A stretch of 64,000 nucleotides of DNA from NCBI GenBank assembly GCA_024704765.1, contig JAKMXF010000336.1:198599-262598 (forward strand), in the 5' to 3' direction. Below the pieces are notes generated by a model. That model made no database searches and was not told the DNA's origin. It worked only from the letters and a program-made list of their open reading frames with translations. This document shows positions 11,825 to 62,518 of this stretch, in pieces (position 1 is the first letter of the stretch; each line of letters starts with the position of its first letter). Made by a program: the position numbers and the translations under genes. Source of the DNA: Oopsacas minuta (lineage: Eukaryota; Animalia; Porifera).

Positions 11825-12328
11825 CCTCAGAATAGTCGTTGAAAGTAAGACTCTACCTCAATTTTGAAATTTGTTACTTCATATACCTCTCTACATACTC
11901 AATTACTCCTGAATAGCATTTTATGCTAAATCTCTAGCATAATTTCAAAAATATGTTTAAGGTGTGTCAATATGATTAATCACCAAAAGCTGCGAAACAA
12001 TAACCTGAGAAACAATCAAATGGTAGTTCTGACCCAAAATGCATATGTGTACCAATTTTTCATGTTAATCTGACTGTTAGATTTCGCTCGACCACGCGGA
12101 TGGACGGACGGACACACGTCCCAAATCATCCATGCCATTAGGGCATCTCCCTATTGGATCTACACTTGTGTTAACATTTGGCGCGTAATGTACGTATATC
12201 AATAAAGGGTGATTTCGCTAAATAAATGTATTATGCTATATACTACCAAAACAAAAACAAGTATAAACGTAAGTATAATTATATTACAATCCTTCATGTT
12301 CCTTTACCAATATCCGGAATAATGAATA

Positions 12329-13165
12329 TCATATGTTGGCTTGTATTGGTGCAGGTATACAGGTTATCGTAGCATTTGGGTTCCAGGTAGTACTCTTGCA
12401 AATCAGACTGCCTTCTTTAGTTGGAATTAAGCAAATAAAACAAAATTTATGCTTGCAGTAATTGCATGTCATCTCGTTGCAACCACCATTATGTTCAATT
12501 ATAGTTGTGCAGTCAGGACAGGCTCTTATACTAGGAACTTTGACTGTTTTGCCTTTTTTATCTTTGAAATCAATCATTGGTGCAGACTCTAGCTGCATAA
12601 TTTTAGCTTTCTTGCAGTTTGAATTCCCACACTTTTTGTATTCAGTTGGGGCAGTTTTCCATTCTCCAAGACAATACCAACAGAAGAGATAGGGTTTAAT
12701 CATATTCTTTGTACAGACAAGACAATTTACCTGAGGGCTGTCTTCGTTTTTACGCTGACAATAACTTTTACAACGAATACACTGTTGTATATCTTGGCTG
12801 AGGCAGAAGTTAACTGACAACGCTGCAGTTAGAAATTGCTTCTCTTCATCATCAGGCAGTCCGAGTATTATGATGTCATCAATATCAACTATTTTTGTGC
12901 AGCTAGCACAACTAATTTCGTGTTTGAGTGTTTTTATTTGCTTCCAAGCATAATCGAGTATATCATCTGGACACATGTAATGTCCACACTTAAGCTTGAG
13001 CCCTCCTTCATCTGAACAGACACAGCATTCTCCATTAGGATGAGGGAATTTTACAGTTCTTTCATAATTCCTCTTCCCGATAAAGTATTCTGCACCTACT
13101 CTAACCTGACTGACTTCAATACCACGATTGTCAAATGCAGATTTAGAAGCACCTAAACTTGACAT
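12329..13165 (-). CDS. RBR E3 ubiquitin ligase, copy 2 (RING1-IBR-RING2 exon, 278-aa ORF)
   Basis: Complete Cys/His scaffold and RING2 catalytic Cys in [11 protein letters not shown]. It is probably the last exon of a gene that includes the Ubl exon at 13869-14065. Confidence 0.9.
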
Positions 13166-13267
13166 TACTATTGCTAACTTGCTATACTATAAAAGTAGCA
13201 GAAATCTACTCAGAAATATTCTCTTTATGTATACGACTATAGACTAGAGGAATGTATACATGTAGGG

Positions 13268-13510
13268 TTCCGTGGGAATGAAAATTTGATCCCCTTTACC
13301 ATCTCATGCACACAGCATTCTCATAGGGATTAGGATTCTCATTACAGGAATTCCCATAGGAATTCCTATGGAATTCTGATAGGAAAATACTAAGTATTCC
13401 CCTACCCATTTCATAATTGTCAACCTGAGTGAAGGAAAAATTGGGCACGGAAAGTATGAATTTAGTGAGACTTCGCGGGACGTAGCACTTGCATTAGACT
13501 GGACTAAGTG
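13268..13510. repeat. Repeat shared with ~21840-22060 and ~61820-62040; its right part is related to the MITE at 24147-24362
   Basis: ATGCACACAGCATTCTCATAG..GATAGGAAAATACTAAGTATTC..CAACCTGAGTGAAGGAAA..GCATTAGACTGGACTA present in all copies. Confidence 0.8.
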
Positions 13511-13868
13511 AACACTGTGCCATGTGTTGGGAATATTTAGCTTTATCATTTATCTAAATAGAAAGCCCTATACTGAAGTTTTCAAATACACAGACGGCAA
13601 ATTTGACAGAAACCCTATATCTTATATCATTATTATATTGGTTAGTCAAGTAGAGACGAGATTAGTACAATTTGTATGGAAGATTCTGCAGTGAATGAAT
13701 ACACTTGTTCAGGCAAGGAATATACCCACCATTAACTTTCTCTTGCAACGCATTGCCAATCTAGTAGTATCTAGTTAAACAGAAGCATCAATACTATATT
13801 TCAAATTGATATTTCAAGTAAAAACACAATAAATAACTCAAATTTTTATCCAGATAGTATGTACTCAC

Positions 13869-14065
13869 TTTCTATTGTAACCACCTGGAAGTCTGGTTAC
13901 AAGCATTATAGTACATTGATCTGAGATTCCATAATCAACTATAGTCATTTTTTTCTCTTGTCGGATATTTTGAAGTTCTTTTCCCACGTATAACAACCGT
14001 TGATGCTCTTCTTGAATCCCACACTTTATGGCAACCTCACATCTGAGTTTAGAAACGGTATAGTC
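13869..14065 (-). CDS. Ubiquitin-like domain exon, not in the ORF track; probable 5' exon of the RBR ligase
   Basis: Acceptor GTTATAG| at 14067-14066 and donor |GTGAGT at 13868. Translates DYTVSKLRCEVAIKCGIQEEHQRLLYVGKELQNIRQEKKMTIVDYGISDQCTIMLVTRLPGGYNR, which aligns to ubiquitin [52 protein letters not shown]. Confidence 0.85.
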
Positions 14066-15737
14066 CTATAACATTGTAAGTAACTAAGTATCATATCAAA
14101 TGTGTTCATACATGCAGAATTACAGGTTACTAAATGGCATTCTCATTGTTTTCTGCTGTATAGACATGTTAATACAAATTTATGAACAATTGATCGACCT
14201 TTTGTCTCCTAATTATTCAATTAGTTTAAATTTTTTCACCTCTAGCTGCGCCACTTTCATGCCAACGGAGCTGTGATAATAACGGGACAGAGGACTGCAG
14301 TTGAAGACAACGTTTAGTAATTACGATACTCTTTACAAACACTGATTTATAAATTTTCGACAAAGTGGTCTAATCATTTAGAAGATAAAGATAAGCCTTG
14401 CACCTTGTATGGAGGGAATATTGATTGGACACGGATTTTGTAATTATGGACCTTCAAAATGAATGCCCTTAATGTTGCGTCATAGATCAATTGATCGATT
14501 CTGATTTTGTTCATATTCAGTGACTATTTGGGGTAGGAATAGGAGCGTAGGGCTCCAAACAAATGTGGGCTCCTTAAATTCATACCCGACAAGGTATTAT
14601 AAAATTTCTCCTACTTTCTTAATGATCACTAAGAATATTTGCTAATTTTCAAAAACATCCAAAGTAATCAAAGAATATATAGTTGATCCTTAATTTGGGC
14701 TAGGAAAATATACTCGCATACCAGAGCCAAAATACATTTTTTGGGTGGTTAAAGGAAATACTGGTGGCCATAGCCAAAAAACTACAGGATGTATTGAGGA
14801 TTGGTGGGATTGCGAGCAAAGCGAGCCAAAACTATACCGAGAGCATTTCGATCCAAATTATTCATCACAATCAACATACAAATGTTAACCATCAAGATTA
14901 AACCGAAAACCAAACTTTTGCAAGAGCTTGAAGTGATTGACATTATTGCAGCCCCACTATTATAGTTATTGTATAGTCTTCCTCAGGCCTTCTTGGACAC
15001 TCCAAGAGTGAATTGTTCTCTCATTCATATCCATGTTAATTTAAACATTGACGATAGCCAAAGGTCTCACATACCAGGATGAGTAATACTATGCTCAACA
15101 TACGCCGGAAAAACATGCACGAAAGATTTGACAAAAGTCTACGGTGGCTACGATACTCAACATTCGCCGAACACATATATATATAAAATCTAGGTTATAG
15201 CAAATACGTAAACATTTACCTGAAATCCTTTTTTCGGAATGACGAAACTGTATGTTTTGTTGCTAAGGCCTATGACAAATATAGTATTCATTGCTAAGAA
15301 TAATAGTATTTACAAAATCTAAAGTATAATTGAATAAATAGATTATTGAATTCAAAATGTTGAATTTAATAAAACTTGAAAGTTTTCAAATCCTGCAAAT
15401 TTGGGAATTTACCAGTTATGGAATCAACTAATCCTAGCAAAACTACATCAATTTAGTCAAAATTAAGAATACAGAGTTTCTTTGTGTTTGGGAAGAATAT
15501 ACATACAGGTGTACTGTGAGAGCATACTATGTGGCAGTTGCATATTATTGTATGCAACCATATCATATAACACATTACTTCATACTCTTATCTACAAATA
15601 TTTCTTAACCAAAAATAGAAATGTATATGAAATTGTAGACTTTGTACAACATTCTAGAAGCTCATAAACTGTGGGAGGGCAGTTTTGTAAATTGGAATGG
15701 TAGGAATTGTAGCAAATATTTTTCAGCACTGGAATAT

Positions 15738-21679: not shown

Positions 21680-21829
21680 TCATGTTTCTCCACCATTCTG
21701 TATTGGTGCTGTTAAACAGGTTATCCTAGCATTTGGGTTCCAGGTAGTACTCTTACAAATCAGACTGCTTCTTGTAATCGGAGTTTAGCAAATTTGACCA
21801 AAGTTATACTTGCAGTAATTGCATGTCAT
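21680..21829 (-). pseudogene. RBR ligase C-terminal fragment
   Basis: Translates [33 protein letters not shown].., homologous to the end of 12329-13165, with an in-frame stop. Confidence 0.85.
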
Positions 21830-22122
21830 GTATGCATGCGGGCTCCGAGGGAATGAAATTTCCATCTTATGCACACAGCATTCTCATAGTTATAGGATTC
21901 CTATCACAGTATTTCCTATTGCAATCTGATAGGAAAATACTAAGTATTCTCCTACCCATTCCATACTTGCCAACCTGAGTGAAGGAAATTTTGTGACAGA
22001 AATATGAATTTCGTGGGACATCGTGAGATGCAGCATTTGCATTAGACTGGACTACAAAAAACGGGACAATTATGTGAAATTCTAATTTTAGAATATTTCA
22101 GATGTAATGATGCTTTCGGTAA

Positions 22123-22542
22123 ACAGCCCTCAGGTAAATTGTCTTGTCTGTACAAAGAATATGAGTAAACCCTATCTCTTCTGTTGGTATTGTCTTGGAG
22201 AATGGAAAATTTCCCCAACTGAATACAAAAACTGTGGGAATTCAAACTGCAAGAAAGCTAAGATTATGCAGCTATAGTCTGCACTAATGATTAATTTCAA
22301 AGATAAAATGGCAAAACAGTCAAAGTTCCTAGAATATGATCCTGTCCTGACTGACAACTATAGTTGAACATAACGGTGGTTGCGACGAGATGACATGCGA
22401 TTACTGCAAGTATAAATTTCTGAAAAATTGTTATATTTGCTTAACTCAGACTGAAAGAGGCAGTCCAATTTGTAAGAGTACTACATGGAACACAAATGTT
22501 ACGATAACTTGTTTACCACCACCAATACACACCAACGTATGG
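22123..22542 (+). pseudogene. RBR ligase fragment (second half of IBR through RING2), frameshifted, opposite orientation
   Basis: [49 protein letters not shown], with indels and stops. Confidence 0.85.
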
Positions 22543-61655: not shown

Positions 61656-61805
61656 TCATGTTTCTCCACCATTCTGTATTGGTACTGTTAAACAGGTTAT
61701 CCTAGCATTTGGGTTCCAGGTAGTACTCTTACAAATCAGACTGCTTCTTGTATTCGGAGTTTAGCAAATTTGACCAAAGTTATACTTGCAGTAATTGCAT
61801 GTCAT
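61656..61805 (-). pseudogene. RBR ligase C-terminal fragment
   Basis: Near-identical to 21680-21829. Confidence 0.85.
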
Positions 61806-62098
61806 GTATGCATGCGGGCTCCGTGGGAATGAAATTTCCATCTTATGCACACAGCATTCTCATAGTTATAGGATTCCTATCACAGTATTTCCTATTGCAA
61901 ACTGATAGGAAAATACTAAGTATTCTCCTACCCATTCCATACTTGCCAACCTGAGTGAAGGAAATTTTGTGACAGAAATATGTATTTTGTGGGACATCGT
62001 GAGATGCAGCATTTGCATTAGACTGGACTACAAAAAACGGGACAATTATGTGAAATTCTAATTTTAGAATATTTCAGATGTAATGATGCTTTCGGTAA

Positions 62099-62518
62099 AC
62101 AACCCTCAGGTAAATTGTCTTATCTGTACAAAGAATATGAGTAAACCCTATCTCTTCTGTTGGTATTGTCTCGGAGAGGGGAAAAGTTCCCTAACTGAAT
62201 ACAAAACTGTGGGAATTAAAACTGCAAGAAAGCTAAGATTATACAGCTAGAGTCTGCACCAAAGATTGATTTCAGAGATAATACAGGCAAAACAGTCAAA
62301 GTTCCTAGAATAATAGCCTGTCCTAAATGCACAACTGTAGTTGAACATAATGGCGGTTGCAACGAGATGACATGCGATCACTGCAAGTATAAATTTCTGG
62401 AAATTTGTTCTATTTGCTTAACTCCGACTAAAGAAGCAGTCTAATTTGTAAGAGTAATACCTGGAGCACAAATGCTACGATAACCTGTTTCCCACCACCA
62501 ATACACATCAACATATGA
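62099..62518 (+). pseudogene. RBR ligase IBR-RING2 fragment, frameshifted
   Basis: Homologous to 22123-22542. Retains [28 protein letters not shown]. Confidence 0.85.

Follow-up and report, generated by a model that had tools for sequence, protein, structure and literature searches.

In the stretch of DNA analysed here, 64,000 nucleotides of contig JAKMXF010000336.1 of the glass sponge Oopsacas minuta (hereafter the window), an exon for a ubiquitin-like (Ubl) fold and an open reading frame (ORF) for a RING-between-RING (RBR) ubiquitin ligase lie in the same orientation on the minus strand, and the question arises whether they encode one protein or two and, in the latter case, how the two products are related. 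A preliminary description had joined them into a single Parkin-like enzyme. Our analysis shows two genes, each of which takes a spliced leader and has its own start and stop codon. It further shows that such pairs recur in the O. minuta genome, and that the same two parts occur as one protein in other eukaryotes. From our point of view, it is rather probable that the two genes form a cognate pair, in which the Ubl would be the ligand of the ligase's allosteric site and probably also be trimmed and conjugated.

Two genes with their own spliced leaders

Four runs of one sample cover the window. The evidence on transcripts comes from the contigs of one RNA-like run (X1), which we take to be RNA-derived because its contigs are spliced and leader-bearing; the other three (X2-X4) behave as DNA, and the kind of run is not on record.

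The upstream gene extends from 15318 to about 13318 and has three exons. At its trans-splice acceptor (ag, 15319..15320), an X1 contig continues with GTAAGTTTT, which is the reverse complement of the 3' end of the spliced leader (SL), ...AAAACTTAC(AG); read on the minus strand, these letters give ...AAAAAACTTAC, followed by the AG that is common to the acceptor. Exon 1 (15220..15318) consists of a 5' untranslated region (5'UTR, 15292-15318), an ATG at 15291 and 24 codons (MNTIFVIGLSNKTYSFVIPKKGFQ) that end at the donor CAG|gtaaat. Whereas the preliminary description had left the first exon unplaced, it can now be located from its identity with the N-terminus of the annotated protein LOD99_8475 (P0139) and from three X1 contigs that continue beyond 14067 with GAAATCCTTTTT, a string that equals window 15222-15233 and occurs only once in the window. 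Because the contigs continue in this way, exon 2 is joined to the exon ending CAG|gtaaat at 15220. Homologous Ubl first exons are also carried by the paralogues in the O. minuta genome. A first-exon candidate from six-frame reading, MKVAQLE (about 14238-14260, phase-0 donor GAG|gtgaaa), was rejected, as both the X1 contigs and LOD99_8475 place exon 1 at 15220-15318. A further X1 contig starts within exon 1, at 15275, and is preceded there by nine letters (AGACCCACT) that are found nowhere in the window.

Intron 1 (14066..15219, 1154 nt) is defined by the exon 1-exon 2 junction in the X1 contigs and in LOD99_8475. It is followed by the 197-nt exon 2 (13869..14065), which is bordered by ttatag| at 14066-67 and by the phase-2 donor AA|gtgagt at 13868, matches LOD99_8475 at 100%, and is open throughout on the minus strand (14065..13869, DYTVSKL...IMLVTRLPGGYNR). 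It encodes residues 25-89 of the product, with the ubiquitin fold, and ends LVTRLPGGYNR. That this exon is real, as had been proposed, is borne out by the X1 splices, by its alignment with PDB ubiquitin chains over residues 22-76 (the matches include eukaryotic ubiquitin-ribosomal fusions) and by the suggested Pfam check against PF00240, which returned a match over positions 20-71 of 72 at E 8e-9, above the gathering score (35.6 bits, cut-off 25.4). The exon keeps the Gly-Gly and has Pro in place of ubiquitin Arg74, both of which had been read correctly. It had also been called hidden, which is true of the ORF track used at the time and not of the public annotation, as LOD99_8475 contains it.

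Downstream of exon 2, a 98-nt gt..ag intron (13771..13868) is removed. The corresponding 13770|13869 joint is present in one X1 contig (side 30, CT..AC ends on the plus strand) and is also implied by LOD99_8475. The start of exon 3 (13761..13770, within an X1 contig spanning 13318-13770) completes a Lys codon and adds Tyr-Tyr and a TAG stop, and the 3'UTR runs on from there toward lower coordinates. The product thus has 92 aa and ends ...RLPGGYNRKYY, with a six-residue tail (YNRKYY) past the Gly-Gly, and the three-exon model is identical to the NCBI protein LOD99_8475. This protein has a full ubiquitin fold, as judged by its matches to PF00240 (E 4.6e-9, residues 24-83) and to Rad60-SLD (residues 3-78) and by a partner pLDDT of 90-91 in the complex model described below.

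The downstream RBR cistron takes the leader as well. At 13183, an X1 contig continues with GTAAGTTTTTT, the same leader letters as at 15320, and this loose end equals the 3' end of the SL. The acceptor (ag, 13182..13183) is followed by 16 nt of 5'UTR (13166..13181, from the sequence) and by the coding sequence (12329..13165), which runs from the ATG at 13165 to the stop at 12329-31 and encodes 278 aa. Because the acceptor at 13181 carries the SL, the RBR ligase has its own mRNA and its own start codon. An in-frame TAG stands 8 codons 5' of the ATG, beyond the leader-bearing exon, and no upstream ATG was found in the leader or in the 5'UTR of either gene. The earlier proposal had named the acceptor at 13181 as one compatible partner of the phase-2 donor of the Ubl exon. 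Both are real splice sites according to the X1 contigs and their phases are compatible, but a join between the two is not supported: X1 shows exon 2 spliced from 13869 to 13770 and the leader attached at 13183, and no X1 contig joining the Ubl exon to the RBR exon was seen. For the transcripts visible in this run, this is the outcome that the preliminary description had itself named as refuting it.

The leader itself can be traced to the genome. A pattern search identified nine homologous SL RNA genes in O. minuta (loci L018-L026, on contigs C10 (three), C16, C19, C41, C133 and C348 (two)), each ending ...AAAAAACTTACAG|gtaagt, while the reversed control pattern had 2 matches. These genes have a common layout, namely a TATA-like box, a leader of ~40 nt, the gtaagt donor and a GGTGTC...CACC hairpin. 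The contigs of relatives that were inspected for the SL (L036, L038) are genomic and bear none. SL trans-splicing has been published for glass sponges (hexactinellids) (PMC10282587; PMC7986045), and no operons had been reported in this group as of PMC7986045. X1 contigs tile the spacer between the two genes (13219-13850) with the 98-nt intron included, and although contigs cannot show a single molecule, this coverage is compatible with either a long 3'UTR or a bicistronic precursor. The arrangement resembles the SL-resolved operons of nematodes and tunicates in that, of two co-oriented genes, the downstream one acquires the SL shortly before its start codon. It differs in that the upstream gene takes the SL too and that the spacer measures ~580 nt, and the polycistronic precursor is in this case putative.

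Paired paralogues and fused relatives

The O. minuta genome holds seven co-oriented pairs in which a Ubl frame precedes an RBR frame at a distance of 0.45-1.3 kb (one each on C336, which is the present locus, C348 and C180, and two each on C29 and C277). In six of the seven, the Ubl frame stops 1-6 codons past the Gly-Gly (GGM, GGT, GGINC, GGNKYY, GGNRYFH and, at this locus, GGYNRK(YY)); the seventh is a pseudogene pair, its Ubl reading GD and its RBR interrupted by a TGA. An in-frame stop 3-7 codons before the RBR ATG is likewise present in six of the seven pairs. The pair L003/L029 on C277 is particularly clear, as it has no GT from the Gly-Gly codons to the Ubl stop and no AG from the in-frame TGA to the RBR ATG, and consequently no in-frame join could keep both the whole Ubl and the start of the RBR. 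Across the pairs, the identities of Ubl and RBR drop in parallel, and the pairing is kept down to 43-48% protein identity. The split layout is also found in another assembly (L034, RBR 65% identical), where the Ubl ends ...RLPGGTK-stop and its taa directly abuts the RBR ATG. The closest paralogue (P0001 on C3, 88%) has an intact RBR gene with a conserved acceptor and no Ubl, and its homologous DNA is limited to 12122-13506.

Further copies of the RBR gene lie within the window. A truncated paralogue on the plus strand (83-175 and 355-1323) is 90% identical from residue 40 on, and its upstream flank at 83-175 matches window 15379-15473, which lies upstream of Ubl exon 1. Apparently the whole pair was copied here, and an internal deletion then took away the Ubl gene together with RBR codons 1-39. 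Fragments of the RBR that are interrupted by stops occur on both strands at 21698-22539 and 61674-62518, and more of them further along C336. They are pseudogene debris within duplicated blocks of receptors with leucine-rich repeats (LRR) and EGF domains.

In other eukaryotes, protein searches identified at least 64 proteins in which Ubl and RBR form a single ORF, for example in the Glomeromycota Glomus cerebriforme and Rhizophagus irregularis; for Chordata and Mucoromycota, the matches are taxon leads only. In one relative (L035/P0057), the equivalent of Ubl exon 2 and the RBR constitute one unbroken genomic ORF. The Gly-Gly is present at the junction in 64 of 65 fused proteins and the exact RLPGG in 50 of them, while the residues past the Gly-Gly are variable; the lone exception is P0038, an NCBI model from O. 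minuta itself. The RBR of this locus is 30-41% identical to the fused family and has the C-x-PAPIQ C-terminus in common with it. In addition, the Ubl exon aligns with the Ubl of P0057, and an FDNRG motif near the N-terminus of the RBR is common to split and fused forms. The present locus hence has the homologous RBR and a Ubl ending RLPGG, in two reading frames rather than one.

A single branch (support 100/100) separates split from fused forms in an unrooted maximum-likelihood tree of 48 RBR parts, in which the label "split" was verified for the O. minuta loci and L034 only. Because the two forms part at a single branch, one fission or one fusion suffices to explain them, and its point lies exactly after the Gly-Gly. 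The two genes appear to be split members of a wider, undescribed family that fuses Ubl-RLPGG via a variable linker to the same ligase, and a limited check of the literature found nothing specific on a Ubl-GG-RBR family. RBR ligases with Ubl partners, ubiquitin and Ubl fusions cleaved after Gly-Gly, and SL trans-splicing are all known. What is new is their combination, namely an uncharacterised RBR clade with a private RLPGG Ubl that is fused in many eukaryotes and separate in glass sponges, and that in some cases comes with a ubiquitin-conjugating enzyme (E2) of its own.

With respect to the Gly-Gly, two known arrangements are comparable. Ubiquitin and Ubl fusion genes (UBA52, RPS27A, FAU/FUBI) place a ubiquitin-like unit ending Gly-Gly before another protein, as do the fused relatives, and short-tailed Ubl precursors (NEDD8, ISG15, SUMO) resemble the sponge Ubl, in which a short tail follows the Gly-Gly. 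In contrast to the ubiquitin fusion genes, the partner here is a ligase (E3), the tail is RLPGG rather than RLRGG, and processing is putative.

The ligase, its predicted complex with the Ubl and the E2 genes beside related pairs

The RBR ORF, the reality of which had been claimed before and holds, matches Pfam IBR_1 (E 2.1e-9) and IBR (E 2.8e-8) over residues 210-252. An AlphaFold2 model built on 48 relatives has a mean pLDDT of 89, and each of its 41 Foldseek matches with E<=1e-3 is an RBR ligase (best E 6e-7, prob 1.0), with ARIH2 and ARIH1 first, followed by RNF216, HOIL-1, Parkin and HOIP. A sequence search likewise places the RING2 of ARIH1/2 first (E 1.6e-6). By sequence and fold the nearest relatives are thus ARIH1/ARIH2, and the epithet Parkin-like has to be dropped. 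The absence of a RING0 had been predicted correctly: ahead of RING1, the model has just two short helices and hence contains neither RING0 nor REP. The single Ubl-RBR polypeptide of the same prediction is not supported at this locus, even though such fusions occur in other organisms. Judged from its sequence and model, the gene product is an Ariadne-like RBR ligase and not a Parkin orthologue, with catalysis presumed.

RING1 (residues 47-89, 12899..13027; sequence and alignment of the 48 relatives) has seven of the eight canonical C3HC4-type positions (C47/C50, C60-x-H62-x2-C65, C86-x2-C89). In the alignment, C60, H62 and C86 never vary and C47 and C89 hardly do. Fused relatives have not kept the first Cys pair (for example DMITW in Glomeromycota, CLITH in P0057), which leaves C-x-H...C-x2-C as the only invariant part, and some members of the family may hence hold just one zinc in RING1. 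Helices at 95-102 and 106-120 follow, and the segment 95-120 (12806..12883) is the predicted Ubl docking surface in the AlphaFold2 and complex models. The IBR (residues 126-184, 12614..12790; alignment and AlphaFold2) contains an invariant set of Cys at 129, 132, 136, 148, 151, 162, 165, 179 and 184, and its residues 126 and 132-150 are in contact with the tail of the Ubl in the complex model. RING2/Rcat (residues 213-256, 12398..12529) is placed by the Pfam matches and the ARIH1 alignment. Its GGCNEM aligns with GGCNHM of ARIH1 RING2, and Cys229 (codon 12479-12481), which coincides with the Ariadne active-site Cys in GGCN(H/E)M, is the presumed catalytic residue. A family-specific motif, C-x-PAPIQ (12332..12361), in which C269 and Q275 are invariant and A272 and P273 nearly so, lies at the C-terminus.

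A model of the RBR together with Ubl residues 1-86 has an ipSAE of 0.82, against 0.01 for the best control. Among solved complexes, 51 of 78 attained the mark applied, and among mismatched pairs 2 of 108 did. The runs agree on at least 98% of the contacts, with a partner pLDDT of at least 90. In the predicted interface, RBR residues 95-121, 126 and 132-150, belonging to the RING1-IBR helices and to IBR strands, would contact Ubl residues 5-11, 41-52 and 70-86, which comprise the Leu8 loop, the Ile44-type patch and the C-terminal tail. Allosteric binding of ubiquitin or Ubls at the RING1-IBR site is general for RBR ligases (PMC9834252).

Exon 2 of the Ubl gene is variable within the sample. A second haplotype of 13869-14065 (runs X1 and X2) differs by 8 nt, all 8 of them nonsynonymous, with the changes Y50F, V51A, Q56E, E61G, D73N and P84E, the last of which turns RLPGG into RLEGG; on the same X2 contig, intron 1 has 0 differences over 680 nt. 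Several of these changes map to the surface that is predicted to bind the RBR. K21T, G22E and D25A occur in a third expressed variant (loose end at 14062). Diversifying selection or gene conversion could be the cause. One contig each in the DNA runs X2 and X3 has a joint of 13822 to 14732, which skips 909 nt and would delete exon 2; its shorter side measures just 20 letters, and either a deletion allele or an artefact caused by a repeat may lie behind it. Letter differences within the RBR exon were also considered as alleles co-varying with the Ubl interface, and this was discarded, as they equal the C3 paralogue throughout.

A third component is suggested by the gene neighbourhood. Beside the L034 pair lies a gene (L034:8195-8740) for a UBE2J2/Ubc6-like E2 (E 3e-37 to UBE2J2), and its best matches in O. 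minuta also lie beside pairs, namely at C29:9822-10289 (minus strand), C277:311428-311895 (plus strand) and C277:303848-304314 (plus strand, with stops). In both assemblies, these E2 genes are on the same strand as the Ubl-RBR pairs and 0.5-3.3 kb from them, so that a Ubl-E3-E2 cassette recurs.

The comparison with characterised RBR ligases shows how the parts have been rearranged. As in Parkin (Ubl-RING0-RING1-IBR-REP-RING2), a Ubl-type unit is tied to an RBR module, and the RING1-IBR allosteric ubiquitin site is predicted to be in use. The Ubl of Parkin has no Gly-Gly and inhibits through RING1. The sponge RBR, by contrast, has neither RING0 nor REP, and its Ubl is a separate gene with Gly-Gly. 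The Ariadne proteins ARIH1 (HHARI) and ARIH2, to which the best sequence and fold matches were found, are activated in trans by a ubiquitin-like protein, NEDD8, on cullin (PMC9834252). They differ from the 278-aa sponge RBR, which has no Ariadne or UBA-like domain, carries Glu for the His of GCNHM in RING2, ends in C-x-PAPIQ and has a private Ubl partner encoded next door. HOIL-1/RBCK1 (Ubl-NZF-RBR) and RNF216, both among the top fold matches, have a defined allosteric ubiquitin site, and HOIL-1 has an N-terminal Ubl as well. The sponge RBR lacks NZF and LTM, and its Ubl is unfused and ends Gly-Gly.

Rival readings and the role of the Gly-Gly tail

If the two products form a cognate pair, one could imagine the following sequence of events. 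The Ubl would serve as the RBR's own ubiquitin-like ligand, with its Ile44-type patch (L9, L49, V80) and its RLPGG tail seated on the RING1-IBR helix as well as on the second IBR strand, and docking at this conserved allosteric ubiquitin/Ubl site would turn the ligase on. Because the Gly-Gly has been retained nearly everywhere and precedes a short tail in the split and a linker in the fused forms, the Ubl would probably also be trimmed at this point and transferred. The likely route would lead from the UBE2J2-like E2 encoded beside several pairs to Cys229, and the outcome might be a feed-forward loop like that of other RBR ligases.

The reading closest to the preliminary description would have the Ubl exon cis-spliced from 13869 to 13181, the main product being one Parkin-like Ubl-RBR protein of ~373 aa whose internal Ubl is either autoinhibitory or cleaved off. 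The acceptor at 13181 does restore the frame after the phase-2 donor (AA|C, then KLAIV-M..., no stop), in-frame combinations of donor and acceptor can be drawn for several paralogues, and fused relatives are common. Summed X1 contig depth is also far higher on exon 2 and the RBR exon than on 13219-13850, although such depth cannot rank parts of a gene. We did not use it as proof that most exon 2 transcripts skip the spacer, as contigs from paralogues additionally inflate the RBR exon. Against a cis-spliced main product stand the joints that X1 does show, the public model of a stand-alone 92-aa protein at this very locus, the stops just past the Gly-Gly in all paralogous Ubl frames, the pair L003/L029 with neither donor nor acceptor in the required place, the abutting taa and ATG of L034, and the C3 paralogue, which retains RBR and acceptor without any Ubl. 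The fusion of one paralogous pair in the NCBI annotation (P0038) has a junction, RLPET-MADV, that removes the Gly-Gly, while the genome there encodes RLPGGNKYY-stop; because its donor inside the Gly-Gly codons deletes what the genome encodes, this fusion looks like a modelling choice. A fused main product therefore seems quite improbable to us.

If there are two proteins, the Ubl might still be a non-covalent regulatory subunit only, that is, an allosteric activator or inhibitor, with RLPGG kept for pairing with the IBR strand and with the neighbouring E2 delivering ordinary ubiquitin. The complex model, which seats Ubl 72-86 with the tail included on IBR 132-150, would agree with this, as would the generality of allosteric ubiquitin/Ubl binding at that site (PMC9834252), the departure of Pro74 from conjugated Ubls and the fact that no dedicated E1 (activating enzyme) or protease was identified, no search for an E1 having been made. 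We nevertheless regard it as unlikely that docking is the whole story. Integral Ubl domains such as those of Parkin and HOIL-1 are usually without Gly-Gly, whereas 64 of 65 fused forms keep it while the residues after it vary freely, the split forms bear short variable tails past it as modifier precursors do, and the fission point coincides with it. This retention and the E2 genes beside the pairs favour a role of the Gly-Gly beyond docking. That the two genes are neighbours by descent only, duplicated as a block and functionally unlinked, is hardly credible: one duplicated block could be the source of all seven pairs, and the identities of Ubl and RBR do fall in parallel, but the pairing persists in another assembly and at protein identities as low as 43-48%, numerous other organisms, fungi among them, have independent single-ORF fusions, and the complex model is confident. 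We hence rank a cognate allosteric ligand with probable conjugation above a purely non-covalent subunit, and the latter above a Parkin-like fused enzyme.

Several points weigh against the cognate pair of separate genes as we see it. The RNA evidence consists of contigs of one RNA-like run, which show presence and not absence, and the leader-bearing contig at 13183 could derive from the 88% identical C3 paralogue with its same acceptor. The in-frame splice from 13869 to 13181 may occur as a rare or minor isoform, and the annotators of P0038 did model a paralogous pair (on C180) as a fusion. The score of the complex model may reflect memory of solved ubiquitin-RBR complexes and would then indicate likeness rather than binding. 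With regard to conjugation, a conjugated Ubl would not usually have Pro at position 74, an E2 gene was sought in the 64,000-nt window and none was found, and neither an E1, for which no search was made, nor a Ubl protease was identified.

As a tentative possibility that goes beyond the cognate pair, the RLPGG protein could be a new ubiquitin-like modifier with a private E3 (this RBR) and E2 (the UBE2J2-like enzyme), encoded as a cleavable fusion in fungi and other animals or as a separate upstream cistron in glass sponges, where it would perhaps be co-transcribed and resolved by the SL. If this were true, trypsin would leave a Lys-LPGG remnant, unlike the Lys-GG of ubiquitin. Because the cassette is multiplied and fast-changing and sits among LRR receptor and death-domain genes, one could speculate that it might serve early animals as a defence-related tagging system similar to ISG15.

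Overall, the claim of a hidden exon and a Parkin-like fusion is largely refuted at this locus, while the underlying biology remains of moderate to high interest. For annotation, the locus demonstrates that in animals with SL trans-splicing, an acceptor that is in frame and lies just ahead of an ATG is not necessarily used in cis, and gene models that fuse such neighbours, as P0038 does, merit checking. RBR ligases are now thought to be activated by ubiquitin or Ubls at one conserved site, and here a whole family would encode its own such ligand, with the fused and split forms acting as a natural "Rosetta stone" by which a ligand can be named for a ligase family that would otherwise be an orphan. 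The question thereby posed is whether RLPGG serves as a site of processing and conjugation, which would amount to a new Ubl pathway equipped with an E2 and an E3 of its own, or as a docking strand alone.

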